Positions 4,886-61,100 of a stretch of 64,000 bases of DNA are shown here, in pieces. Origin of the DNA: Macrostomum hystrix. Lineage: Eukaryota; Animalia; Platyhelminthes. Numbering within the stretch: the first letter of the stretch is position 1; the number at the start of each line of letters is the position of its first letter. The stretch spans positions 1,054,001 to 1,118,000 of the forward strand of contig CATNEN010000007.1 of the NCBI GenBank assembly GCA_950097015.1, given 5' to 3'. A model generated the notes under the pieces. That model had not been told where the DNA came from. It saw only the letters and a program-made list of their open reading frames with translations, and ran no database searches. Both the position numbers and the translations under genes were made by a program.

Positions 4886-5590
4886 TTAGATGTCGGATGA
4901 CTGGCCCAGTTTTGGCTTCGTCGTCACAGGCGGCGGCAGCGGGTGGCGCTGGTGTTGGTAGGTTTCCTGATAAGCTGGAGGCGCCATGCCCTGGGCTGCA
5001 CGGTTCAGCGAAGACTGAGAGTGAGCCGGTCTGACACCCACAGCCAGCTGGTCATTGCTGCCAGCCCGGTACATGGCGGCTGCGGCGGCTACGGACGAGA
5101 ACTGCTGCACCCCCTGCGGATTGTAGCTGGCGCCACGCTGCTGGAACTGCGGCTGACTGGCCTGCGGCTGGTTCTGGTACTGCGACAAGTACTGCAGCTG
5201 CGCCTGCGACATGTGCTGAGGCGCGGCCTGGGCGCCGCCGTCGTAGGTGCTCGGCGGAGCCGATGAAAAGATCTGCGTGTTTCGCATGACCTGGCCGGCA
5301 GCACTGGGCGGCGGCAAGTAGCCGAAGCCTTGGTCCAATTCGTCCTTGCGTTTCAGGCCCTTGCATAAAATCTTAATCTGCATGGCTAGGGGATAGGCGC
5401 CGATGCCGAGGCCCACTAGGACGAATATCACCCCAAACACCATGAACAAGTCGTAGTTGGACCCATCGAAGCCGTAGGTTCGGCCGAACACAAGAATCAG
5501 GAAGCCGAGCAGGAAGATAACTCCGCCAACGCCAAGAAGTGTGTACAGCTTGCGGTACTTGGCCACTTCGTCCTGTTCCAGGTAGCCCAT
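4886..5590 (-). CDS. Intronless 234-aa membrane protein: N-terminal two-helix hairpin and Q/A/P-rich cytoplasmic tail with a PPxY motif
   Basis: ATG-to-stop GC-rich ORF in AT-rich surroundings. Two hydrophobic segments (LYTLLGVGGVIFLLGFLILVFG; LFMVFGVIFVLVGLGIGAYPLAM) and a PPAY motif. Family not recognised. Confidence 0.8.
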   Translation of the reverse strand: MGYLEQDEVAKYRKLYTLLGVGGVIFLLGFLILVFGRTYGFDGSNYDLFMVFGVIFVLVGLGIGAYPLAMQIKILCKGLKRKDELDQGFGYLPPPSAAGQVMRNTQIFSSAPPSTYDGGAQAAPQHMSQAQLQYLSQYQNQPQASQPQFQQRGASYNPQGVQQFSSVAAAAAMYRAGSNDQLAVGVRPAHSQSSLNRAAQGMAPPAYQETYQHQRHPLPPPVTTKPKLGQSSDI

Positions 5591-13640: not shown

Positions 13641-15870
13641 AACACCTCATAACACCCTACTCAAATACGCCTCTCATAACACCCTACTCAAAGACGCTTA
13701 TCATAACACCCTACTCAAAGACCCCTCTCATAACAGCCGTCTCAAAGACCCTTCTCATAACATCCGACTCAAAGACGCCTATCATAACACCCTACTCAAA
13801 GACCCCTCTCATAACACCCTACTCAAAGACGCCTATCATAACACCCTACTCAAAGACCCCTCTCATAACATCCGACTCAAAGATGCCTATCATAACACCC
13901 TACTCAAAGACACCTCTCATAACACCCTACTCAAAGACACTTCTCATAACACCCTACTCAAAGACGCCTATCATAACACCCTACTCAAAGACACCTCTCA
14001 TAACACCCTACTCAAAGACACCTCTCATAACACCCTACTCAAAGACACCTCTCATAACACCCTACTCAAAGACACCTCTCATAACACCCTACTCAAAGAC
14101 ACCTCTCATAACATCCGACTCAAAGACCCCTCTCATAACACCCTACTCAAAGACACCTAACATAACACCCTACTCAAAGACACCTAACATAACACCCTAC
14201 TCAAAGACACCTATCATAACACCCTACTCAAAGACCCCTATCATAACATCCGACTCAAAGATGCCTATCATAACACCCTACTCAAAGACACCTCTCATAA
14301 CATCCGACTCAAAGACCCCTCTCATAACACCCTACTCAAAGACACCTAACATAACACCCTACTCAAAGACCCTATCATAACATCCGACTCAAAGATGCCT
14401 ATCATAACACCCTACTCAAAGACACCTCTCATAACACCCTACTCAAAGACACCTCTCATAACATCCGACTCAAAGACCCCTCTCATAACACCCTACTCAA
14501 AGACACCTAACATAACACCCTACTCAAAGACACCTATCATAACACCCTACTCAAAGACGCCTATCATAACACCCTAGTCAAAGACGCCTATCATAACACC
14601 CTACTCAAAGACCCCTCTCATAACACCCTACTCAAAGACGCCTATCATAACACCCTACTCAAAGACCCCTCTCATAACATCCGACTCAAAGATGCCTATC
14701 ATAACACCCTACTCAAAGACACCTCTCATAACACCCTACTCAAAGACACTTCTCATAACACCCTACTCAAAGACGCCTATCAAAACACCCTACTCAAAGA
14801 CACCTTTCATAACACCCTACTCAAAGACACCTCTCATAACACCCTACTCAAAGACACCTCTCATAATACCCTACTCAAAGACGCCTATCATAACACCCTA
14901 CTCAAAGACGCCTATCATAACACCCTAGTCAAAGACGCCTATCATAACACCCTACTCAAAGACCCCTCTCATAACACCCTACTCAAAGACGCCTATCATA
15001 ACACCCTACTCAAAGACCCCTCTCATAACATCCGACTCAAAGATGCCTATCATAACACCCTACTCAAAGACACCTCTCATAACACCCTACTCAAAGACAC
15101 TTCTCATAACACCCTACTCAAAGACGCCTATCATAACACCCTACTCAAAGACACCTCTCATAACACCCTACTCAAAGACACCTCTCATAACACCCTACTC
15201 AAAGACACCTCTCATAATACCCTACTCAAAGACGCCTATCATAACACCCTACTCAAAGACACCTCTCATAACATCCGACTCAAAGACCCCTCTCATAACA
15301 CCCTACTCAAAGACACCTATCATAACACCCTACTCAAAGACCCCTTTCATAACATCCGACTCAAAGACCCCTCTCATAACATCCGACTCAAAGATGCCTA
15401 TCATAACACCCTACTCAAAGACACCTCTCATAACACCATACTCAAAGACACCTCTTATAACACCCTACTCAAGGACCCCTTTCATAACATCCGACTCAAA
15501 GACCCCTCTCATAACATCCGACTCAAAGATGCCTATCATAACACCTTACTCAAAGACACCTCTCATAACACCCTACTCAAAGACACCTCTCATAACACCC
15601 TACTCAAAGACACCTCTCATAACACCCTACTCAAAGACACCTCTCATAACATCCTACTCAAAGACACCTCTCATAACATCCGACTCAAAGACCCCTCTCA
15701 TAACATCCGACTCAAAGACACCTCTCATAACACCCTACTCAAGGACACCTCTTATAACACTCTTCTCAAAGAACCCCTCAAAGACTCAAAGACACCTCTC
15801 ATGACACCCTACTTAAAGACACTCTTTATTGCACCTTACTCAAAGACTCCTCTAATAAAAGCCTACTCAA
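13641..15870. repeat. 27-bp minisatellite (ataacaccctactcaaagacacctctc), ~80 copies, in kelch intron
   Basis: Visible array with degenerate edges. The rare variant ccctagtc recurs at a 351-bp (13-unit) offset. Confidence 0.97.
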
Positions 15871-15904
15871 AGATTGCTTAAGATTTATTGCAAAAAGTTT
15901 CCCC

Positions 15905-17646: not shown

Positions 17647-20540
17647 CTCCCAGATGCTTAGATTAGGAAGGCCATCCTCCCCGATCCTGAGATAAGGAAG
17701 GCCAACCTTCCAGATCCTCAGATTAGGAAGGCCATCTTCTCAGATGCTCAGATTAGGAAGGCAATCTTCTCAGATCCTCAGATTAGGAAGGCAATCTTCT
17801 CAGATCCTCAGATTAGGAAGGCAATCTTCTCAGATCCTCAGATTAGGAAGGCAATCTTCTCAGATCCTCAGATTAGGAAGGCAATCTTCTCAGATCCTCA
17901 GATTAGGAAGGCCATCTCCCCAGATCCTGAGATTAGGAAGGCCATCCTCCCAGATGCTCAGATTAGGAAGGCCATCTTCCCAGATCCTGAGATTAGGAAG
18001 GCCATCCTCCCAGATCCTGAGATTAGGAAGGCCATCCTCCCAGATCCTGAGATTAGGAAGGCCATCTTCCCAGATCCTGAGATTAGGAAGGCCATCCTCC
18101 CAGATGCTCAGATTAGGAAGGCCATCTTCCCAGATCCTGAGATTAGGAAGGCCATCCTCCCAGATCCTGAGATTAGGAAGGCCATCTTCCCAGATCCTGA
18201 GATTAGGAAGGCCATCTTCCCAGATCCTGAGATTAGGAAGGCCATCCTCCCAGATCCTGAGATTAGGAAGGCCATCCTCCCAGATCCTGAGATTAGGAAG
18301 GCCATCTTCCCAGATCCTGAGATTAGGAAGGCCATCTTCCCAGATCCTGAGATTAGGAAGGCCATCCTCCCAGATCCTGAGATTAGGAAGGCCATCTTCC
18401 CAGATCCTGAGATTAGGAAGGCCATCCTCCCAGATCCTGAGATTAGGAAGGCCATCTTCCCAGATCCTGAGATTAGGAAGGCCATCTTCCCAGATCCTGA
18501 GATTAGGAAGGCCATCCTCTCAGATCCTGAGATTAGGAAGGCCATCTTCCCAGATCCTGAGATTAGGAAGGCCATCCTCCCAGATCCTGAGATTAGGAAG
18601 GCAATCTTCTCAGATCCTCAGATTAGGAAGACCATCTTCTCAGATGCTCAGATTAGGAAGACCATCTTCTCAGATGCTCAGATTAGGAAGACCATCTTCT
18701 CAGATGCTCAGATTAGGAAGGCAATCTTCTCAGATCCTCAGATTAGGAAGGCAATCTTCTCAGATGCTCAGATTAGGAAGGCAATCTTCTCAGATCCTCA
18801 GATTAGGAAGGCAATCTTCTCAGATCCTCAGATTAGGAAGGCAATCTTCTCAGATCCTCAGATTAGGAAGGCAATCTTCTCAGATCCTCAGGTTAGGAAG
18901 GCAATCTTCTCAGATCCTCAGATTAGGAAGGCCATCCTCCCAGATGCTCAGATTAGGAAGGCCATCTTCCCAGATCCTGAGATTAGGAAGGCCATCCTCC
19001 CAGATGCTCAGATTAGGAAGGCCATCTTCCCAGATCCTGAGATTAGGAAGGCCATCCTCCCAGATCCTGAGATTAGGAAGGCCATCTTCCCAGATCCTGA
19101 GATTAGGAAGGCCATCTTCCCAGATCCTGAGATTAGGAAGGCCATCTTCCCAGATCCTGAGATTAGGAAGGCCATCCTCCCAGATGCTCAGATTAGGAAG
19201 GCCATCTTCCCAGATCCTGAGATTAGGAAGGCCATCCTCCCAGATCCTGAGATTAGGAAGGCCATCTTCCCAGATCCTGAGATTAGGAAGGCCATCTTCA
19301 CAGATCCTGAGATTAGGAAGGCCATCCTCCCAGATCCTGAGATTAGGAAGGCCATCCTCCCAGATCCTGAGATTAGGAAGGCCATCTTCCCAGATCCTGA
19401 GATTAGGAAGGCCATCTTCCCAGATCCTGAGATTAGGAAGGCCATCCTCCCAGATCCTGAGATTAGGAAGGCCCTCTTCCCAGATCCTGAGATTAGGAAG
19501 GCCATCCTCCCAGATCCTGAGATTAGGAAGGCCATCTTTCCAGATCCTGAGATTAGGAAGGCCATCCTCTCAGATCCTGAGATTAGGAAGGCCATCTTCC
19601 CAGATCCTGAGATTAGGAAGGCCATCCTCCCAGATCCTGAGATTAGGAAGGCCATCCTCCCAGATCCTGAGATTAGGAAGGCCATCTTCCCAGATCCTGA
19701 GATTAGGAAGGCCATCTTCTCAGATGCTCAGATTAGGAAGACCATCTTCTCAGATGCTCAGATTAGGAAGACCATCTTCTCAGATGCTCAGATTAGGAAG
19801 ACCATCTTCTCAGATGCTCAGATTAGGAAGGCAATCTTCTCAGATCCTCAGATTAGGAAGGCAATCTTCTCAGATCCTCAGATTAGGAAGGCAATCTTCT
19901 CAGATGCTCAGATTAGGAAGGCAATCTTCTCAGATGCTCAGATTAGGAAGGCAATCTTCTCAGATCCTCAGATTAGGAAGGCAATCTTCTCAGATCCTCA
20001 GGTTAGGAAGGCAATCTTCTCAGATCCTCAGGTTAGGAAGGCAATCTTCTCAGATCCTCAGATTAGGAAGGCCATCCTCCCAGATGCTCAGATTAGGAAG
20101 GCCATCCTCCCAGATCCTCAGATTAGGAAGGCCATCCTCCCAGATCCTCAGATTAGGAAGACCATCTTCTCAGATGCTCAGATTAGGAAGGCAATCTTCT
20201 CAGATCCTCAGATTAGGAAGGCAATCTTCTCAGATCCTCAGATTAGGAAGGCAATCTTCTCAGATGCTCAGATTAGGAAGGCAATCTTCTCAGATGCTCA
20301 GATTAGGAAGGCAATCTTCTCAGATCCTCAGATTAGGAAGGCAATCTTCTCAGATCCTCAGGTTAGGAAGGCAATCTTCTCAGATCCTCAGGTTAGGAAG
20401 GCAATCTTCTCAGATCCTCAGATTAGGAAGGCCATCCTCCCAGATGCTCAGATTAGGAAGGCCATCCTCCCAGATCCTCAGATTAGGAAGGCCATCCTCC
20501 CAGATCCTCAGATTAGGAAGGCCATCTTCTCAGATGCTCA
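17647..20540. repeat. 30-bp minisatellite (agattaggaaggccatcttcccagatcctg), ~96 copies, starting ~65 nt after the kelch stop codon
   Basis: Visible array with block structure. 19801-20160 is repeated at 20161-20520. Confidence 0.98.
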
Positions 20541-31001: not shown

Positions 31002-31106
31002 AACACGAATGTAGGATATGAACAGGAACACGAATGTAGGATATGAACAGGAACACGAATGTAGGATATGAACAGGAACACAAATGTAGGATATGAACAG
31101 GAACAC
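31002..31106. repeat. 25-bp satellite, left stub (~4 copies) cut off by the retroelement insertion
   Basis: Same unit (aacaggaacacgaatgtaggatatg) as 33348-36442. Confidence 0.93.
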
Positions 31107-32574
31107 AGGCCCCGAGCCAGAGGCGGGAACTCGACGGGGTCAGCCGCCCAGTCCCCACCCCCGGCCCTGAGCCCAGGCCCAGAGTCACCCTCAACCGGTG
31201 CCGACACCGCACCCTGGGCCGTGGGAGGGGCGCTCGAAGGGCCCTGCTCGATGGAGCTGGGCACCTTAGAGGCCTCCCCCGTAGCCCTTGGTTGCGGCGC
31301 CTGCCCCGGTGGGCCACCGCGCATCTCAGCGCGCAGCTGGGCCATCCTGGCGGTTCGCACCACCTCGGAGGCCCGCTGGAGAAGGCCCCGGCGCTTTGTG
31401 ATGCGCGCGGGGCGACGCTCAGAGCTGCCAGCGATGGCACGCTCTGGCCTTTTTTGGCGAGACGACTGGGCCCTGCCCCCAGTCCCAACCTCGGGGTCCG
31501 AGGACCCTTCAGTGGCCGGTACGGTGGTGGGCCCGGTCTGACCTCGAGATTTATCTGCCTCGAAGGCGAAGATTTTGGTCTTCCACAGACCGATGCAGAT
31601 GTTGGCGCCATCTGGGTAACGGCGTGTCCATTGCTCGGACAGGCCCAGAATGGCGGTAAACCCGGTGCCATCGGGGCGCAGGATCGTGCGTGCACGATCA
31701 GGCCCGCTGTCGGCAGCTCCCGGTTCATCGCGATGAGGCCCATGCGGAGGTCCTCAGCGCTGGTGACGACACTTTTCGCCGGGACGAAAATGCGGTGTCG
31801 CTTGGTCTTTGGTGGCTCGTTCTCCCGGAGGAAGTCGAGGCCAGCCGCCCAGCTCTGCGTGGGCAGCAACTCAAGGAGCCGCCGCCCTGATTCCGCGTCG
31901 CCGGGCCAGACGACGAAGCACGATTCCCTGGTAGCGCTTGCGCCGACCGCCAGGGGCTCGCCCTTCAGTTGGAGTTGCCACAGCATAGCATCTATGTTGC
32001 GGCAAATGTTGCTGAGCTGTTCGCTGCTCAGCCTTTTTCCGTCTCTGCCGGTGATGACAACGGCAGGTTGCCTACGTGCGATGGCGGCGTAGGTGGCATG
32101 TGGTCCCGGGCCCTGTCCGGTGGCGACCCCACCCTCGGGATCAGCGTCGGCGGTGGGCACAGGGCCCTCTGCCTCCGCTTCTCCTTCAGGCCGAGCCGCC
32201 GTCCGGATGGGCGCCGGGACCTCCTTGGCCCGCGACCCTGGCCTCGGGGCGTCGTGGGCTCCGCCCCGTGCAGGAGCCTGGGCAGGAGGCGCAAGGCCCC
32301 CCGCCCCAGCCCCCGCCCTAGGCAGAGCCCCTTCGGCCCCTCTGGTCTGGGCCCGGTCCTCGGTCGATGGAGCCGGCTTGCCGTGGGCCATTAAGCGCCT
32401 ACGACGCTTTGCCGCTCCAGAGGTTGAGGAGCGCTTAGCGCCCCGGTCATCGCGCGAGTTGGGCAGCGCGGTATTTGTGGCGGTCGCGGGGCCAGCTAGC
32501 CCGGGCGCCGCAGCGTGTATGGCCTCGGGCACCATGGTGTCCTCGGCCGGAGCAGTTGGTAGGCTGGAAGCCAT
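31107..32574 (-). pseudogene. ORF1-like protein with DUF4780-like domain; one -1 frameshift near 31690 and a truncated C-terminus
   Basis: ATG 32574 (MASSLPTAPAEDTM..), then an A/P/G/R-rich N-terminus with a basic patch (AAKRRRRL). The domain reads AVVITGRDGKRLSSEQL..CFVVWPGDAESGRRLLELL..TKRHRIFVPAKSVVTSAEDLRMGLIAMNRELPTAGLIVH[fs]TILRPDGTGFTAILGLSEQWTRRYPDGANICIGLWKTKIF. This resembles DUF4780 of R1/LOA ORF1s by eye (R.R.(W/F).P, L...N..LPT). The second frame stays open to the junction at 31107. Confidence 0.65.
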
Positions 32575-32806
32575 TTGAAAGCTGCAATGAGGAGAGGGGC
32601 TTCCTGTAGACACAGGCAGGAATAACCCGCTCAGCCGCGATCCCAAAGCTGAGCGGGGGCAGCCAAAAAAGACAAGTTACAACCCGGGGTGGGATGCCAG
32701 GACCACCGGGAGGAACCGTAGGAGGCCAGACTACTCCCTGGTCAAGCGTCCATCAGCACGGTCAACACTGGGACATTAGAGGGCGCTATTTGGCCAGCGC
32801 CGAGGC

Positions 32807-33075
32807 CTGCGGACTGGCCGCATACCCTGTTAAGGTCAAAGGGTGACACCTTTCCCTCAGAGCCGAAGCCAGAGGTACCTGATCACGCACAGGTGCACGA
32901 AACGCTGCGGACAGGCCGCATACCCTGTTAAGGTCAAAGGGTGACACCTTTCCCTCAGAGCCGTAGCCAGAGGTACCTGATCACGCACAGGTGCACGAAC
33001 GCTGCGGACTGGCCGCATACCCTGTTAAGGTCAAAGGGTGACACCTTTCCCTCCAACCGGGGCTAGAGGTACCCA
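32807..33075 (-). repeat. ~98-bp tandem repeat (2 full copies plus a partial third) in the retroelement 5' UTR
   Basis: Units start at 32807, 32905 and 33002 (ctgcggac.ggccgcataccctgttaaggtcaaagggtgacacctttccctc..). Confidence 0.93.
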
Positions 33076-33115
33076 GTTAGGCCGGAGGCCCTGTATGGGT
33101 CGTCCAGCGCTGTTG

Positions 33116-33342
33116 CCCATTCTGTCCGGCTGCCCTAGGGTCAGCCTTGAACACTCGCGGGACGTGTACCCATGGGTCAGCTGACGGGACAACGTGGAGA
33201 GGATTCCTTCACCCGGAGGCACAGGTCTCCTTCCTGCCAAACCTGCTCAAAAAACGACTGCAGGTGTGAGGCATCGCAGACCTTAGCCCGTAGGCCTGGT
33301 CTGACTCATACCACACAGGCATTGTGTCCCGCCGGTGCGAGC
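33116..33342 (-). ncRNA. HDV-like (CPEB3-type) self-cleaving ribozyme
   Basis: Minus-strand elements in canonical order: P1 GCUCGC (33342-33337); J1/2 160 nt; P2 CCCAU (33176-33172); P3 GGG; L3 UACACGU; P3' CCC; P1' GCGAGU (G1-U wobble); P1.1' GU; P4 UC-AA-GGCUG-A-CCC-UA-GGG-CAGCC-G-GA; J4/2 CAGA (C at 33124); P2' AUGGG (33120-33116). Confidence 0.78.
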
Positions 33343-33347
33343 CAAAC

Positions 33348-36300
33348 ACACGAATGTAGGATATGAACAGGAACACGGATGAAGGATATGAACAGGAACA
33401 CGGATGAAGGATATAAACAGGAACACGAATGTAGGATATGAACAGGAACACGGATGTAGGATATGAACAGGAACATGAATGAAGGATATGAACAGGAACA
33501 CGAATGTAGGATATGAACAGGAACACGAATGTAGGATATGAACAGGAACACGGATGTAGGATATGAACAGGAACACGAATGTAGGATATGAACAGGAACA
33601 CGAATGTAGGATATGAACAGGGACACGGATGTAGGGTATGAACAGGAACACGAATGTAGGATAAGAACAGGAACACAAATGTAGGATATGAACAGGAACA
33701 CGAATGTAGGATAAGAACAGGAACACGGATGAAGGATATGAACAGGAACACGAATGTAGGATATGAACAGGAACACGAATGTAGGATATGAACAGGAACA
33801 CTAATGTAGGGTATGAACAGGAACACGGATGTAGGATAAGAACAGGAACACGGATGAAGGATATGAACAGGAACACAAATGTAGGATATGAACAGGAACA
33901 CGAATATAGGATATAAACAGGAACACGAATGTAGGATATGAACAGGAACACGAATGTAGGATATGAACAGGAACACGAATGTAGGATATGAACAGGAACA
34001 CAAATGTAGGATATGAACAGGAACACGAATGTAGGATATGAACAGGAACACAAATGTAGGATATGAACAGGAACACGAATGTAGGATATGAACAGGAACA
34101 CGAATGTAGGATAAGAACAGGAACACGGATGAAGGATATGAACAGGAACACGAATGTAGGGTATGAACAGGAACACGAATGTAGGATAAGAACAGGAACA
34201 CGGATGAAGGATACGAACAGGAACACGAATGTAGGATATGAACAGGAACACGAATGTAGGATATGAACAGGAACACGAAAGTAGGATAAGAACAGGAACA
34301 CGAATGAAGGATATGAACAGGAACACGAATGTAGGGTATGAACAGGAACACGGATGAAGGATATGAACAGGAACACTAATGTAGGATATGAACAGGAACA
34401 CGGATGAAGGATATGAACAGGAACACTAATGTAGGATATGAACAGGAACACGAATGTAGGATATGAACAGGAACAGGAATGAAGGATATGAACAGGAACA
34501 CGAATGTAGGATATGAACAGGAACACGGATGTAGGATATGAACAGGAACACGAATGTAGGATATGAACGGGAACACGGATGTAGGATATGAACAGGAACA
34601 CGAATGTAGGATATGAACAGGGACACGGATGTAGGGTATGAACAGGAACACGAATGTAGGATAAGAACAGGAACACGAATGTAGGATATGAACAGGAACA
34701 CGAATGTAGGATAAGAACAGGAACACGGATGAAGGATATGAACAGGAACACGGATGTAGGATATGAACAGGAACACGAATGTAGGATATGAACAGGAACA
34801 CGAATGTAGGAAATGAACAGGGACACGGATGAAGGATATGAACAGGAACACGAATGAAGGATATGAACAGGAACACGAATGAAGGATATGAACAGGAACA
34901 CGAATGTAGGATAAGAACAGGAACACGAATGAAGGATATGAACAGGAACACGAATGTAGGATAAGAACAGGAACACGAATGTAGGATATGAACAGGAACA
35001 CGAATGTAGGATATGAACAGGAACACGAATGTAGGATAAGAACAGGAACACGAATGTAGGATATGAACAGGAACACGAATGTAGGATATGAACAGGAACA
35101 CGAATGTAGGATATGAACAGGAACACGGATGTAGGATATGAACAGGAACACGGATGTAGGATATGAACAGGAACACGAATGTAGGATAAGAACAGGAACA
35201 CGGATGAAGGATATGAACAGGAACACGAATGTAGGGTATGAACAGGAACACGAATGTAGGATATGAACAGGAACACGGATGAAGGATACGAACAGGAACA
35301 CGAATGTAGGATATGAACAGGAACACGGATGTAGGATATGAACAGGAACACGAATGTAGGATATGAACGGGAACACGGATGTAGGATATGAACAGGAACA
35401 CGAATGTAGGATATGAACAGGGACACGGATGTAGGGTATGAACAGGAACACGAATGTAGGATAAGAACAGGAACACGAATGTAGGATATGAACAGGAACA
35501 CGAATGTAGGATAAGAACAGGAACACGGATGAAGGATATGAACAGGAACACGGATGTAGGATATGAACAGGAACACGAATGTAGGATATGAACAGGAACA
35601 CGAATGTAGGAAATGAACAGGGACACGGATGAAGGATATGAACAGGAACACGAATGAAGGATATGAACAGGAACACGAATGAAGGATATGAACAGGAACA
35701 CGAATGTAGGATAAGAACAGGAACACGAATGAAGGATATGAACAGGAACACGAATGTAGGATATGAATAGGAACACAAATGTAGGATATGAACAGGAACA
35801 CGAATGTAGGATATGAACAGGAACACGAATGTAGGATAAGAACAGGAACACGAATGTAGGATATGAACAGGAACACGAATGTAGGATATGAACAGGAACA
35901 CGAATGTAGGATATGAACAGGAACACAGATGAAGGATATGAACAGGAACACGAATGAAGGATATGAACAGGAACACGAATGTAGGATAAGAACAGGAACA
36001 CGGATGAAGGATATGAACAGGAACACGAATGTAGGGTATGAACAGGAACACGAATGTAGGATAAGAACAGGAACACGGATGAAGGATATGAACAGGAACA
36101 CGAATGTAGGATATGAACAGGAACACGGATGTAGGATATGAATAGGAACACAAATGTAGGATATGAACAGGAACACGAATGTGGGATATGAACAGGAACA
36201 CGGATGAAGGATATGAACAGGAACACAAATGTAGGATATGAACAGGAACACGAATATAGGATATAAACAGGAACACGAATGTAGGATATGAACAGGAACA

Positions 36301-36442
36301 CGAATGTAGGATATGAACAGGAACACGAATGTAGGATATGAACAGGAACACAAATGTAGGATATGAACAGGAACACGAATGTAGGATATGAACAGGAACA
36401 CAAATGTAGGATATGAACAGGAACACGAATGTAGAATATGAA
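33348..36442. repeat. 25-bp satellite (aacaggaacacgaatgtaggatatg), ~124 copies
   Basis: Visible array. The 372-866 aa SCSCSYPTFVFLFISY ORFs are three-frame read-throughs with 75-nt periodicity. Confidence 0.98.
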
Positions 36443-52156: not shown

Positions 52157-55100
52157 ATGGATAACAATGGTGTTCTTGATGATGATTTGGCATCTAAAGT
52201 AAGATTTTTGCTTTTTTAAATTTACATTTTTTCATAAAGATAATTTCTTGAAGGACATGGTAATGACAAGCCCAGTATAAGTGAGTATGGGGTGGGGTTG
52301 TTGGCAACAGCATAATTATGGCATGGCATGGAAGATGAAGGGAATATTATTAGGCCTTTAATATAAAAAACAAATCATTTGCATTTACACAGCGCGACAG
52401 GCAGAGCAGTGAGAGGCGTCAGCTGACAGCCACTGCTCGGGAAGTTAAAAGACGCGAAGACGAAAATCGTATTAAACGGGTGAGCAAATCGTTTGCTGGG
52501 TGCTTTGTATTTGATGTGATTCAGGTTCCATTTAAATTGATCTTATTTACCCTCGCATAAGTATATTAATTTCACCATGTTTGAGACTGCTGTAGACTGC
52601 TGACTTCTTTGTGACTTTTTCTTGGAATTAGACACAATTATCTAAGACCATTTGATTCTATAATCCTATATGACAGTTCGCAGCAGAATTAACTTTATCT
52701 ATTCATGACGCTGACTGCTTTGATAAACTTGATAATGACCTATGAATCTATGTCCAAATCATGTCACTCACTCCATGACCACACAAATGATCCAGTGAAT
52801 CAATAACCCAAATGATGCCATCACCTCAAAATCCGTGATTCCGTTCTCATGACCCATTGCTCTTGACCAATTACCTATTGACCTTGACCCATCAAACATT
52901 GACCTTGACCCATCACTCATTGACCTTGACCCCATCGCCCATTGAACTTTACCCATCACTCATTGACCATGACCCCATCGCCCATTGACCTTGACCCATC
53001 AAACATTGACCTTGACCCATCACTCATTGACCTTGACCCCATCGCCCATTGACCTTGACCCATCAAACATTGACCTTGACCCATCACTCCTTGACCTTGA
53101 CCCATCACTCCTTGACCTTGACCCATCACTCATTGACCTTGACCCCATCGCCCATTGACCTTGACCCATCAAACATTGACCTTGACCCATCACTCATTGA
53201 CCTTGACCCCATCGCCCATTGACCTTGACCCATCAAACATTGACCTTGACCCTATCTCCCATTGACATTGATCCTATCACTCATTGACCTTGACCAATCA
53301 CTCCTTGTCCAATCGGCCTGCAGCAAGAGGAGCGCGCAGCGGACGGCGCATCTTACACTTCCTCGTCGAAGCGTGGCGGCGGTAGCGGCGGCGCTATTCG
53401 TCGGGCCAGCGATTTGGAGAGCGCCGATAGCGCCAGCCTTGGCAGCGACCAGCAGCCGGGCAACGCTGCCGACCGACTGAGCGCCCTGGCCGAGCTTCGC
53501 GAACAGCTGGCCGCCATGGAGGCCCAGTACGAGAGGGCACTGTGCAGCAACGCCGAGCTGGCTAGCGAGAAGCAAGTCCTGGCCTATGAGGCTGCCCTCC
53601 TAGCCGACAAGCTGGAAGATGCCGAGGAGGCTAACAGAGAACTGCAGCGGGCGTTTAATGAGAAGCGCAAAGAGAGCGCCTACTTAAAGAATCAGGTTCG
53701 TATGCTAGATTTGTAGACTATCTTCAGGGCTGATGATTGTAGATGTTCAGGGCTGATGATTGTAGATGTTCAGGGCTGATGATTGTAGATGTTCAGGGCT
53801 GATGATTGTAGATGTTCAGGGCTGATGATTGTAGATGTTCAGGGCTGATGATTGTAGATGTTCAGGACTGATGATTGTAGATGTTCAGGGCTGATGATTG
53901 TAGATGTTCAGGGCTGATGATTGTAGATGTTCAGAGCTGATGATTGTAGATGTTCAGGGCTGATGATTGTAGATGTTCAGGGCTGATGATTGTAGATGTT
54001 CAGGGCTGATGATTGTAGATGTTTAATGCTGATGATTGTAGATGTTCAGGGCTGATGATTGTAGATGTTCAGGGCTGATGATTGTAGATGTTCAGGGCTG
54101 ATGATTGTAGATGTTCAGGGCTGATGATTGTAGATGTTCAGGGCTGATGATTGTAGATGTTTAATGCTGATGATTGTAGATGTTCAGGGCTGATGATTCT
54201 AGATGTTCAGGACTGATGATTGTAGATGTTCAGGGCTGATGATTGTAGATGTTTAATGCTGATGATTGTAGATGTTCAGGGCTGATGATTCTAGATGTTC
54301 AGGACTGATGATTGTAGATGTTCATGACATTTGGAATCTTCTGGATCCTACTATTTAGGTACCATAGTTTCATACCTTATTCAGGGCTTATAATTCTAAA
54401 GCCGACTCAAACACCGCAGGTGTCTGAGCTCAGCCACCAATGCGATTATGTGAGGCGCCAGTTGGAACAGCGCGACCAGCTGATTGCCCAGTCTGACTGC
54501 GTACTGCTCGGCGAATTCGACTCCATCGCGCCTAATTCAAACCCCGCAATAGACGGTAATGGGGATTCTTCCTGTGCTGGACTATTGTTGCCAAGGCAAC
54601 TGGCCGAGCGAGTGCAAGCCCTTCCCGGTGCGAGCCTGGACGAAAAGCTGCGGGGTGCCCTAGACGACCTGACAGCTGTCCAAGGCAAGAGGGAGCTGCT
54701 GGAGAAGGAGGTGAGCGCATTTGCTTATCCCTATAGCTAATCCTCAGTAGTGACTCTGGTTAATCGTACATAGTGAGTCTGATTATTCCTCAATAGTGAG
54801 TCTGATTATTCCTCAATAGTGAGTTTGGTTAATCCTCAATAGTGAGTCTGGTTAATCCTCAATAGTGAGTTTGGTTAATCCTCAATAGTGAGTCTGGTTA
54901 ATCCTCAATAGTGAGTTTGGTTAATCCTCAATAGGGAGTCTGGTTAATCCTCAATAGTGAGTTTGGTTAATCCTCAATAGTGAGTCTGGTTAATCCTCAA
55001 TAGTGAGTTTGGTTAATCCTCAATAGTGAGTCTGGTTAATCCTCAATAGTGAGTTTGGTTAATCCTCAATAGGGAGTCTGGTTAATCCTCAATAGTGAGT

Positions 55101-58100
55101 CTGGTTAATCCTCAATAGTGAGTCTGGTTAATCCTCAATAGTGAGTTTGGTTAATCCTCAATAGGGAATCTAGTTAATCCTCAATTATGACTCTGGTTAA
55201 TCCTCAGTAGTGGCTCTGGTTAATCCTCAGTAGTGGCTCTGGTTAATCCTCAGTAGTGACTCTGGTTAATCCTCAGTAGTGGCTCTGGTTAATCCTCAGT
55301 AGTGACTCTGGTTAATCCTCAGTAGTGGCTCTGGTTAATCCTACATAGTGAGTCAGATTATTCCTCAATAGAGAGTCTGGTTAATCCTCAATAGTGAGTC
55401 TTGTTAATCCTCAATAGTGAGTCAGATTATTCCTCATTAGGGAATCTAGTTAATCCTCAATTGTGACTCTGGTTAATCCTCAGTAGTGACTCTGGTTAAT
55501 CCTCAGTAGTGACTCCAGTTAATCCTCAGTAGTGACTCTGGTTTATCCTCAGTAGTGGCTCTGGTTAATCCTACATAGTGAGTCAGATTATTCCTCAATA
55601 GAGAGTCTGGTTAATCCTCAATAGTGAGTCTTGTTAATCCTCAATAGTGAGTCTTGTTAATCCTCAATAGTGAGTTTGGTTAATCCTCAGTAGTGACTCT
55701 GGTTAATCCTCAATAGTGAGTTTGGTTAATCCTCAATAGTGAGTCTTGTTAATCCTCAATAGTGAGTTTGGTTAATCCTCAGTAGTGACTCTGGTTAATC
55801 CTCAATAGTGAGTTTGGTTAATCCTCAATAGTGAGTCTTGTTAATCCTCAATAGTGACTCTGGTTAATCCTCAATAGTGAGTTTGGTTAATCCTCAATAG
55901 TGAGTCTTGTTAATCCTCAGTAGTGACTCTGGTTAATCCTCAATAGTGAGTTTGGTTAATCCTCAATAGTGAGTCTGGTTAATCCTCAATAGTGAGTCTG
56001 GTTAATCCTCAATAGTGAGTCTGGTTAATCCTCAATAGTGAGTTTGGTTAATCCTCAATAGTGACTCTGGTTAATCCTCAATAGTGAGTTTGGTTAATCC
56101 TCAATAGTGAGTCTGGTTAATCCTCAATAGTGAGTCTGGTTAATCCTCAATAGTGAGTTTGGTTAATCCTCAATAGTGAGTTTGGTTAATCCTCAATAGT
56201 GAGTCTGGTTAATCCTCAATAGTGAGTTTGGTTAATCCTCAATAGTGAGTTTGGTTAATCCTCAATAGTGAGTTTGGTTAATCCTCAATAGTGAGTCTGG
56301 TTAATCCTCAATAGTGAGTTTGGTTAATCCTCAATAGTGAGTCTGGTTAATCCTCAATAGTGAGTCTGGTTAATCCTCAATAGTGAGTTTGGTTAATCCT
56401 CAATAGTGAGTTTGTTAATCCTCAATAGTGAGTCTGGTTAACCTCAATAGTGAGTCTGGTTAATCCTCAATAGTGAGTCTGGTTAATCCTCAATAGTGAG
56501 TTGGTTAATCCTCAATAGTGAGTCTGGTTAATCCTCAATAGTGAGTCTGGTTATCCCAATAGTGAGTTGGTTAATCCTCAATAGTGACTCTGGTTAATCC
56601 TCAATAGTGAGTCTGGTTAATCCTCAATAGTGAGTCTTGGTTAATCCTCAATAGTGAGTCTGGTTAATCCTCAATAGTGAGTCTGGTTAATCCTCAATAG
56701 TGAGTCTGGTTAATCCTCAATAGTGAGTTTGGTTAATCCTCAATAGTGAGTCTGGTTAATCCTCAATAGTGAGTCTGGTTAATCCTCAATAGTGAGTTTG
56801 GTTAATCCTCAATAGTAGTGAGTCTGGTTAATCCTCAATAGTGAGTCTGGTTAATCCTCAATAGTGAGTTTGGTTAATCCTCAATAGTGAGTTGGTTAAT
56901 CCTCAATAGTGAGTCTGGTTAATCCTCAATAGTGAGTTTGGTTAATCCTCAATAGTGAGTCTGGTTAATCCTCAATAGTGAGTCTGGTTAATCCTCAATA
57001 GTGAGTTTGGTTAATCCTCAATAGTGACTCTGGTTAATCCTCAATAGTGAGTCTGGTTAATCCTCAATAGTGAGTCTGGTTAATCCTCAATAGTGAGTCT
57101 GGTTAATCCTCAATAGTGAGTCTGGTTAATCCTCAATAGTGAGTCTGGTTAATCCTCAATAGTGAGTTTGGTTAATCCTCAATAGTGAGTTTGGTTAATC
57201 CTCAATAGTGAGTCTGGTTAATCCTCAATAGTGAGTCTGGTTAATCCTCAATAGTGAGTCTGGTTAATCCTCAATAGTGAGTCTGGTTAATCCTCAATAG
57301 TGAGTTTGGTTAATCCTCAATAGTGACTCTGGTTAATCCTCAATAGTGAGTCTGGTTAATCCTCAATAGTGAGTCTGGTTAATCCTCAATAGTGAGTCTG
57401 GTTAATCCTCAATAGTGAGGTCTGGTTAATCCTCAATAGGGAGTCTGGTTAATCCTCAATAGTGAGTTTGGTTAATCCTCAATAGTGAGTCTGGTTAATC
57501 CTCAATAGTGAGTTTGGTTAATCCTCAATAGGGAGTCTGGTTAATCCTCAATAGTGACTCTGGTTAATCCTCAATAGTGAGTTTGGTTAATCCTCAATAG
57601 TGAGTTTGGTTAATCCTCAATAGTGAGTCTGGTTAATCCTCAATAGTGAGTTTGGTTAATCCTCAATAGGGAGTCTGGTTAATCCTCAATAGTGAGTCTG
57701 GTTAATCCTCAATAGTGAGTTTGGTTAATCCTCAATAGGGAGTCTGGTTAATGCTCAATAGTGACTCTGGTTAATCCCTCAGTAGTGAGTCTGGTTAATC
57801 CTCAATAGTGAGTTTGGTTAATCCTCAATAGTGAGTCTGGTTAATCCTCAATAGTGAGTCTGGTTAATCCTCAATAGTGAGTTTGGTTAATCCTCAATAG
57901 GGAGTCTGGTTAATCCTCAATAGTGAGTCTGGTTAATCCTCAATAGTGAGTCTGGTTAATCCTCAATAGTGAGTTTGGTTAATCCTCAATAGGGAGTCTG
58001 GTTAATGCTCAATAGTGACTCTGGTTAATCCTCAGTAGTGAGTCTGGTTAATCCTCAATAGTGAGTTTGGTTAATCCTCAATAGTGAGTCTGGTTAATCC

Positions 58101-61100
58101 TCAATAGTGAGTCTGGTTAATCCTCAATAGTGAGTTTGGTTAATCCTCAATAGGGAGTCTGGTTAATCCTCAATAGTGAGTCTGGTTAATCCTCAATAGT
58201 GAGTCTGGTTAATCCTCAATAGGGAGTCTGGTTAATCCTCAATAGGGAGTCTGGTTAATGCTCAATAGTGACTCTGGTTAATCCTCAGTAGTGAGTCTGG
58301 TTAATCCTCAATAGTGAGTTTGGTTAATCCTCAATAGTGAGTCTGGTTAATCCTCAATAGTGAGTCTTGTTAATCCTCAATAGTGAGTCTTGTTAATCCT
58401 CAATAGTGAGTTTGGTTAATCCTCAGTAGTGACTCTGGTTAATCCTCAATAGTGAGTCTGGTTAATCCTCAATAGTGAGTTTGGTTAATCCTCAATAGTG
58501 AGTCTGGTTAATCCTCAATAGTGAGTCTGGTTAATCCTCAATAGGGAGTTTGGTTAATCCTCAATAGTGAGTCTGGTTAATCCTCAATAGTGAGTTTGGT
58601 TAATCCTCAATAGTGAGTCTGGTTAATCCTCAATAGTGACTCTGGTTAATCCTCAATAGTGAGTCTGGTTAATCCTCAATAGTGAGTCTGGTTAATCCTC
58701 AATAGTGAGTCTGGTTAATCCTCAATAGTGAGTCTGGTTAATCCTCAATAGTGAGTTTGGTTAATCCTCAATAGTGAGTCTGGTTAATCCTCAATAGTGA
58801 CTCTGGTTAATCCTCAATAGTGAGTTTGGTTAATCCTCAATAGTGAGTTTGGTTAATCCTCAATAGTGAGTTTGGTTAATCCTCAATAGTGAGTTTGGTT
58901 AATGCTCAATAGTGAGTCTGGTTAATCCTCAATAGTGAGTTTGGTTAATCCTCAATAGTGACTCTGGTTAATGCTCAATAGGGAGTCTGGTTAATCCTCA
59001 ATAGGGAGTCTGGTCACTCTGTCACCATCCCGCAGGTCCAGCAGCTGCAGGAGGAGTTGAATAGAGCCGACCGCGGCCGCGTTGACGCCGACCAGCTCGA
59101 GAAGCAGCGAGAGGCAGCCAGGCAGCTGGCTGATCACAAGTACAAACTGACCACGGCCCAACAGCAGATCACCGCTCTGCAGGCCGATGTGAGTTGGGAT
59201 TTCCCCCCGATTATTTTGTACATAAAAAATATGTATAAGTATAAGTGCATTAAACATTAGGATTTGATTTGTGATTTGGGATGTGTTTGTTCAAAGTAAG
59301 ATTTTGTGTATGATAAAGAATAGGATTCTTGTTTTTGGGACTTAATTTGTGTTTACTCTAAATTAGAAATTGTTTTTATTATCAGTTGGGATTTGTGTTT
59401 ATTTATGTTTGTGATCCAGGATTCACGTGTCGGTTGATAATGACATCTCACGGTGCAATCTCTCAGGATTTTGTCTGCCTGTTGCTAAGCTGAGCAATGC
59501 TAAATGCAGATTTAACTGTTATTTTTCCAGCTAACCCAGCAAAAAGACAAGGTTCGTATTGCTTGCTCTACTAGACTCGTTTCAAGTGTTTTTTTTCATA
59601 AAAATGGAATGAAAGCCAGTTGGCTGTTTTGCACTGCAGTTATATTGACGGATTTTGGGATTAATTGAAGATGTTGCCAGCATTTTCTGCTACTGGGCTG
59701 ACTTGGTGAGACACTAGTGTTGGGGGCGGTCTGGTTGGTCAGGCAGGGCTACACACACAGCACCTGGGATGTCGCTAAGTGAAAATGCCTTTTGCACAAT
59801 GTCTTGGCGCAATAGTGTTAATGCTAGCTTGGCAATTTAAAATTATAACTAATTCCCTTCCTTACCGCGCCCGCAAAATATTCCGCATCGGCAATTCACA
59901 CAGCGGCAAATGACTGTTATTTCAGTATGCTTTTGCAATCTGCTGTGTTCACTACTATCAAGTAGTGTAGTTTGCTTTTCATTGAGAATGAACCAATTTT
60001 GGTTTGCTTTTACCCGGTGCTTTTATTCTAAAGACTTCAGACTTTAAAATTTATACGATTAATTTGCTAAACCGATGCCGTACTGAAAATGAAATTTGAA
60101 GTTTTAGAAAGATTCAATATAATAACGTTTTGCAGACTTTTAGCGTTCGTACAGGTCACTACCCTTTTTAATATATTCTTTTTAACGGAGATTATGTGAT
60201 TTCTGAGTTGTAGTCAGCTTACTAAAATTCAAATATGATGAAGGAAAGCTAAATTATATATATATATACAACAGAGGTTGTAGCCTAGTGGTTAGGGCGT
60301 CGGACTCACCACTTGAAGGTCGGGGGTTCGATTCCTGATTCCACTGAAACAATTTGTGTCCTTTAGCGAGGCACTTAACTCTGCATTGCTTTAGTTCACC
60401 CAGCTGTTAAATGGGTACCAGTATTAGCTGGGATAATTGAAGGTGGGTGTGGCGTCCCCCCGTCCATGGACTGAACAGCTGTACGCAGTCTTCAGATGCG
60501 CCGCGCAATAGCTGCGGCTGTGCTGTCGGCTGCACATCTGGCCCGATTGGGACAGGTGTAATCAATTATTTATTATTATTAATATATACGTATATAATAG
60601 ATACTTCTCCATAACAAGTGATTAGAGTGTAGATCCCTTCTGTGTGATAAAATGGGGATTCAAATTCCTTAATATTGGAATGGGATTTAGATCCACTCCA
60701 GTGGATTTTAGGGATCTAAATGCATTTTACTAGAAATCGGAATTAGATTCCCATTTTAAGAGGATCTGGGATTTATATCCCCAATGATAAAATAACCATT
60801 TGCATCCCTTGGGATTGGGATTTGGGTCACACGTACTGAATGGGGATTTAGACCCCTTTAGGATTTATCCCTCATTTATTTAAATACCTTCCACTGGAGA
60901 AGGGATATAGATTCCTTCTAGTGGGATCTGGGATTTAGATCCTCAATGATTAAATTATAATTTTAAGGTTCAAGTCTCCCCTTACTTGTCAATAATCCGT
61001 AATCCATTTAACAGTAAAAAGTCCACACGGAGGGCATTTCAGATACCCAAAATACCTAATTGCAGATTAAGCAGAATATGGATTATACCGGTTTTCCCCC

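Follow-up and report, generated by a model that had tools for sequence, protein, structure and literature searches.

A predicted HDV-like self-cleaving ribozyme with a large J1/2 domain at the exact 5' end of a flatworm LINE family

In drz-Agam-2-1, an HDV-like ribozyme, a pinch exerted by a structured J1/2 domain and an extended P2 speeds cleavage almost 1000-fold (PMC4908430). The ribozymes of silkmoth R2 elements carry J1/2 loops of 216-498 nt, and P4 is variable across the class; R2 elements whose RNA is cleaved at their own 5' end typically show variable untemplated bases at the 5' junction (PMC3774820). A literature search for LINE-associated ribozymes of flatworms found only the twister variants of Schistosoma (PMC8501958), and a search for Macrostomum ribozymes found nothing relevant. 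Here we describe a LINE family of a macrostomid flatworm whose first 227-234 nt very probably form a large HDV-like self-cleaving ribozyme that trims its own RNA at the first base of the element, G1. This prediction is supported by the ends of genomic copies, by covariation and by a depletion of polymorphism in the ribozyme core. One copy was recognized in the window, by which we mean the whole 64-kb stretch of DNA analyzed.

The minus strand from 33342 to 33116 holds an HDV-like double pseudoknot in which every helix is present (Table 1). The original prediction had ended the ribozyme at 33116, where P2 is indeed found, but the ribozyme runs slightly further, to 33109, by way of an extension of P2. 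The helices follow each other in the order P1-J1/2-P2-P3-L3-P3'-P1'-J1/4(P1.1)-P4-J4/2-P2', which matches the HDV-like class, and all of them are fully paired. Counted from G1 (33342), P1 comprises positions 1-6/185-190, P1.2 10-18/152-160, P2 167-171/223-227, P3 172-174/182-184 and P4 197-215, and the P2 extension (162-165/231-234) is reached across an A/CAA internal loop. P1.1 is made up of two pairs, A176-U192 and C177-G191 (A-U, C-G), and in J4/2 the sequence CAGA, with C219 (window 33124), fits the consensus C-N-R-A. The L3 sequence UACACGU is one that we take to be similar to the L3 of CPEB3. An MFE fold, in which no pseudoknots are possible, recovers the nested helices P1.2, P2, P2 extension, P3 and P4 with z = -2.2.

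All the pseudoknot elements named beforehand on the minus strand are thus there, position by position. The P4 hairpin is present as proposed, but its innermost pair would leave a loop of 2 nt and was therefore dropped, which gives GGCUG-A-CC[CUAG]GG-CAGCC. A P1 of 6 bp, which had been noted as shorter than the usual 7, is in fact normal in this class (PMC4908430, PMC3774820). The long J1/2 insert is real and constitutes a peripheral domain closed by P1.2, but it is not unusual, as structured J1/2 domains and loops of 216-498 nt have been published.

Table 1. Coordinates (window positions) of the ribozyme parts, the element copy and its surroundings.
Feature	Position	Strand	Remarks
25-bp satellite array	33348..36442	.	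upstream of the element; same satellite resumes at 31002-31106 downstream
Spacer GUUUG, five bases	33343..33347	-	between satellite and G1; part of neither satellite nor element
Window copy of the retrotransposon	31108..33342	-	first ~2.24 kb of the ~6.25-kb element; ends inside ORF1
P1 5' strand GCUCGC	33337..33342	-	G1 = 33342 = predicted cleavage site and element base 1; two compensatory changes in L036
J1/2 peripheral domain, 151 nt	33183..33333	-	closed by P1.2; 3-nt linker to P1, 1-nt linker to P2
Helix P1.2, 9 bp	33333-33325 with 33191-33183	-	predicted by MFE fold and alignment fold; multibranch interior
Sequence-conserved block in J1/2	33270..33312	-	GGUAUGAG; hairpin CAGACC-A-GGCC-UACG-GGCU-AA-GGUCUG, then CGAUGCC
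P2 extension 5' strand GCUG, bulged A, P2 5' strand CCCAU	33172..33181	-	GCUG 33181-33178; CCCAU 33176-33172
P3 GGG/CCC enclosing L3 UACACGU	33159..33171	-	L3 = 33168-33162; L3 bases 2-3 form P1.1
P1 3' strand GCGAGU	33158-33153	-	pairs with GCUCGC; G1-U wobble
J1/4 GU	within 33151..33158	-	P1.1 partners
P4 hairpin	33128..33146	-	preceded by UCAA
J4/2 GGACAGA	33121..33127	-	candidate catalytic C at 33124
P2 3' strand AUGGG, internal loop CAA, extension 3' strand CAGC	33109..33120	-	AUGGG 33120-33116; CAGC 33112-33109; ribozyme 3' end
98-nt tandem repeats of the 5' UTR	32807..33053	-	2.5 units here, about 2.5 to 7 depending on the element copy

The search with an HDV descriptor that had been proposed as a check retrieved the ribozyme site. 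A strict descriptor, set to the stringency of the observed motif, matched one site only on both strands of the whole 64-kb window, the ribozyme at 33342, and with the start fixed at base 1 it matched 2 of 20,000 dinucleotide shuffles; as it was written after the motif had been seen, this chance estimate is optimistic. With a relaxed descriptor, dozens of spurious matches per kb were obtained. Taken by itself the motif is thus weak evidence; the weight lies in the copy ends and the covariation. Rfam models gave no match at the gathering threshold in the whole window, none at E<=10 in the region 33000-33450 and no HDV-type match at E<=1 in a full-length copy and in L035; a search with the Rfam HDV and CPEB3 models had been suggested, and in that region neither CPEB3 nor any other model matched. 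The ribozyme belongs to no curated Rfam sequence family. A permissive descriptor might also have matched GC-rich sequence by chance, a reading in line with the many spurious matches of the relaxed descriptor and the missing Rfam match; if the fixed-start shuffle rate is scaled by the number of G starts, about 1-3 strict matches per window are expected at this composition.

The location of the motif was analyzed in genomic copies. A 248-nt query that included the ribozyme gave at least 207 candidate matches in the 220-Mb assembly, in which the window spans C7:1054001-1118000, and 30 copies (L001-L030) were fetched. Query base 6, which is 33342, is where the homology to other copies sets in, and in 30 of 30 fetched copies it begins exactly at G1, with unrelated sequences upstream. 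The sister LINE families B and C also begin at G1, and contigs from four other public sequencing runs (run type unspecified) end at G1 with differing flanks. The ribozyme was claimed to lie at the exact 5' end of a retroelement, and the 30 copies and the two sister families bear this out. Full-length cDNA copies thus end where cleavage is predicted; these are ends of DNA copies, not of RNAs. A chance match would have had to fall on this independently defined element end, where shuffles match about 1 in 10,000. The distribution of variation among the 30 copies argues in the same direction, as shared polymorphic columns were found in 0 of 83 core positions and in 12 of the 151 in the J1/2 domain (p=0.0095), and columns with any variation in 5 of 83 and 26 of 151, respectively (p=0.016). 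Evidently, the core is under selective constraint within the family, and such a depletion of shared polymorphism speaks against chance.

Immediately before G1, the 30 copies L001-L030 carry G 12 times and A, C and T 6 times each (p=0.05). This excess of G could be due to untemplated addition or be a trace of reverse-transcribed caps. In the window, the distance from the satellite junction to G1, given earlier as about 5 nt, is five bases, with the satellite end at 33348, and judged by analogy these bases (GUUUG) are probably untemplated 5'-junction bases. Capped LINE RNAs leave a cap-derived extra G, and the G at -1 resembles such a base. The copy ends could thus belong to a conserved structure that is real but not catalytic, since an internal promoter that starts at base 1 also yields a precise common 5' end.

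An ORF2 protein search led, through P0001, to a 6.5-kb Logan contig (L036; ERR14788467) that begins exactly at its homologous G1, and whose ORF2 is 74.5% identical to that of the family of the window copy (family A), whereas the ribozymes are only 59% identical. In the comparison of the window copy with this single divergent homologue, on which the covariation rests, 19 of 19 alignable pairs (P1, P1.1, P2, P2 extension and P3) are canonical in both sequences, and the core pairs show 6 compensatory changes, one one-sided change (G-U to G-C) and no broken pair. From the window copy to L036, P1 has changed from U-A to C-G and from C-G to U-A, P1.1 covaries in each of its two pairs (A-U to C-G; C-G to U-A), and one compensatory change each is found in P2 and in the P2 extension; G1 pairs with U in the window copy and with C in L036. 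When the 3' partner was slid by 1-3 columns as a control, 6-9 of the 19 pairs held, and by permutation the probability of at least 6 double changes from 13 changed positions among 38 is p~1e-4. P1.2 is kept in L036 with 3 further compensatory changes, P3 is invariant between family A and L036, and L3 has the pattern U-N-N-N-C-G-U in both. The covariation check that had been called for therefore left P1, P3 and P1.1 without a broken pair in this one divergent homologue. A chance match gives no account of covariation in the core and in P1.2, and taken together with the element end and the constraint on the core we regard it as a very improbable explanation of the motif.

L036 differs from the window copy elsewhere in the ribozyme. 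P4 is replaced by a different 9-bp hairpin, and J4/2 ends in CUGC, not in C-N-R-A, with the C kept 3 nt before P2 and C instead of A as the last base. L036 fails the strict descriptor, and its MFE fold prefers other pairings in which the ribozyme helices are absent. A genome search with the L036 ribozyme found only old copies of the window copy's own family, and families B and C, whose ribozyme is that of the window copy at ~95% identity, thus add no deep covariation. A further protein, P0002, has an ORF2 that is 56% identical. Another relative, L042 (from P0121), starts inside the 98-nt repeats, without the ribozyme, and in the distant relatives L040 and L041 (ORF2 ~36%) the relaxed descriptor gave dozens of mutually inconsistent matches.

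The block 33312-33270 in J1/2 has hardly changed between family A and L036, in spite of the differences in the core helices, and the base of its hairpin covaries (C-G to G-C). A metagenome scan gave no match to the conserved J1/2 motif. A K-turn in the conserved J1/2 internal loop was considered and rejected by eye, as the unpaired bases of the second strand do not fit. That the block is conserved in sequence, and not only in pairing, is what would be seen for a protein- or factor-binding site, and this again can be explained by a structure without catalytic activity. In L1Tc, a single stretch of 77 nt acts as promoter and as ribozyme (PMC3383444); a promoter may likewise coexist with the ribozyme here, and the two readings are therefore not exclusive. 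A promoter alone, however, does not account for compensatory changes in P1, P1.1 and P2 that keep an HDV double pseudoknot, and a non-catalytic leader would have no reason to mimic the fold at base 1 complete with the U...CG of L3 and the C of J4/2. We therefore consider a conserved but non-catalytic structure unlikely, and favor a self-cleaving ribozyme.

The greater conservation of the J1/2 block in sequence, as compared with the core helices, hints at a second function. To this can be added a comparison of three lineages (L050, L051 and L052; C3:8578000-8585300, C7:8658800-8665800 and C29:8488650-8495600) with window positions 33342-32700. Their ORF2 open frames are 1287, 1273 and 1245 aa long, their ORF2 proteins are 62-75%, their ORF1 proteins 34-46% and their ORF2 DNA 65-74% identical, and the first ~630 nt (ribozyme and 98-nt repeats) are 95-99% identical, all starting at G1. 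By ORF2, L036 lies closer to family A than do B and C, yet its ribozyme is far more diverged. This incongruence between 5' module and ORF2 points to a recent exchange or homogenization of the 5' module between lineages. Possibly, the ~630-nt ribozyme-bearing 5' UTR is a transferable cassette that was recently exchanged or homogenized among at least three LINE lineages and whose J1/2, in addition, has a second sequence-specific function; we offer this combined proposal tentatively, as it is somewhat doubtful. Beyond pinching P1 and P2, J1/2 may serve in binding of an element protein, in cap-independent start of translation or as a promoter at the DNA level.

Full-length copies of the element are ~6.25 kb long and encode ORF1, which in the full-length copy has no Pfam match, followed by APE (PF14529/PF03372), RT (PF00078) and RNase H (PF00075) domains. 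The 3' tail consists of TAAGTCAAG-like repeats, L031 is flanked by a target duplication of ~11 bp, and there are >200 candidate copies. The element is an APE-type non-LTR retrotransposon with RNase H (I/LOA/R1/Ingi-like group), and the nearest named proteins in the ORF2 protein search are from Macrostomum lignano. The 98-nt unit of the 5' UTR is ~93% conserved in the otherwise unrelated L042, and in L036 a diverged version of it can be recognized; its role may be that of a promoter/enhancer monomer or of a protein-binding unit.

The ribozyme core of the window copy is identical to the family majority, and ORF1 is frameshifted relative to L031; judged from its sequence, this copy is a dead, 3'-truncated 5' fragment with an intact ribozyme. 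The proposal that the ribozyme lets the element be excised from read-through satellite transcripts consequently applies to the family but not to the window copy: its ribozyme could still cut satellite read-through RNA, though the truncated and frameshifted product could not retrotranspose. Truncation at the 3' end is unusual for a LINE, and beyond it the satellite resumes in nearly continuous phase (31100-31115, 33343-33352). Microhomology at this 3' breakpoint was looked for and rejected, as the full-length element continues with GGGGCAC and the window with TGTG. A duplication-like overlap, (C/T)GTGT, is seen at the satellite junctions of the window copy.

Minisatellites are a general feature of the region, as the 64-kb window holds at least 20 different arrays with units of 14-34 bp, some of them several kb long (for example 54738-59014, 17648-20540 and 13646-15873). 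A fourth lineage (L047; G000:C7:12486050-12490400), with an ORF2 open frame of 1251 aa and a 5' truncation within the 98-nt repeats, sits inside a 23-bp satellite array; together with the tandem-repeat flanks of L007, L009, L018 and L029 this suggests that there may be a bias towards minisatellites. Elsewhere, a copy consisting of the ribozyme only (L039; G000:C39:113576-116640, minus strand 1586-1360) stops just after the 3' strand of P2 (AAUGGG) and is followed by unrelated AT-rich sequence. In L035, two pairings are present at positions ~4983-5050 (G000:C7:2802982 onward), GGCCUGC/GCAGGCC with 7 bp and GGGGGG/CCCCCC. An HDV-like fold was considered for this segment and discarded, as the standard layout could not be fitted by eye and no Rfam model matched.

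With the observed fold, its coincidence with the copy ends, its covariation and the constraint on its core as the starting point, we propose the following pathway. Transcription from any upstream promoter would give a read-through precursor RNA, in which P1.2 would form first and pinch P1 against the extended P2 (5 bp, loop and 4 bp). The core (P3/L3, the two-pair P1.1, P4 and J4/2 with C33124) would fold and cut 5' of G1, whereby the host or satellite leader would be shed and an RNA with a 5'-OH would be left. This trimmed RNA would be the template for retrotransposition, so that full-length new copies would have G1 as their first base, in some cases preceded by a few untemplated bases. We infer that cleavage is Mg2+-dependent, that C33124 acts as general acid and that the reaction takes place co-transcriptionally.

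Our results add a well-supported predicted HDV-like ribozyme to a macrostomid flatworm LINE family. This ribozyme illustrates how the pinch architecture occurs in nature, here with a peripheral domain that is large and in part conserved in sequence. The presence of one ribozyme/5' UTR module in divergent lineages also makes a clean system for LINE 5'-end swapping and selection. The finding leaves the known mechanism unchanged. CPEB3 and genomic HDV, which we take to share the topology, match in L3 (U-N-N-N-C-G-N) and in the register of P1.1 (L3 bases 2-3 with two J1/4 bases); in contrast to the ribozyme described here they have a short J1/2 and stand outside a retroelement context, and their Rfam models do not match it. 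In the twister-variant LINE ribozymes of Schistosoma mansoni, a self-cleaving ribozyme at the 5' end of a flatworm LINE does the same job, but it belongs to the twister class and not to the HDV-like class (PMC8501958). Pr77/L1TcRz of the trypanosomatid L1Tc likewise is a ribozyme of HDV-like type that takes up the first bases of an APE-type LINE with RNase H (PMC3185411, PMC3383444, PMC4035085). As in the present case, a single conserved 5' hallmark is common to several different elements of the genome, and the shared 5' module recalls this Pr77 hallmark of trypanosomatid elements (PMC4035085). Pr77 is compact, with 77 nt, and has been shown to be promoter and ribozyme, whereas the predicted ribozyme here measures ~230 nt.

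The R2 ribozymes resemble the present one in having a P1 of 6-7 bp, a P2 of at least 5 bp, a variable P4, a J1/4 of 0-2 nt and a J1/2 of up to hundreds of nt, and in both cases cleavage at the element's own 5' end, here predicted, goes together with variable untemplated junctions (PMC3774820). R2, however, is a single-ORF element with a restriction-like endonuclease and is restricted to 28S rDNA, whereas the present element, which has APE, RT and RNase H domains and two ORFs, is found at dispersed sites and in satellites. The mechanism, the architecture with P1.2 and an extended P2 (drz-Agam-2, R2) and the 6-bp P1 were already known, and the ribozyme of this LINE family is a new, well-supported example. 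With the drz-Agam-2 family of Anopheles gambiae it shares the nested double pseudoknot, a J1/2 closed by P1.2 with short linkers, and the extended P2 (PMC4908430). The two show no similarity in sequence or by covariance model. The domain here, of 151 nt, is multibranched and contains a hairpin conserved in sequence, and the element that carries the ribozyme is another one, from another phylum.
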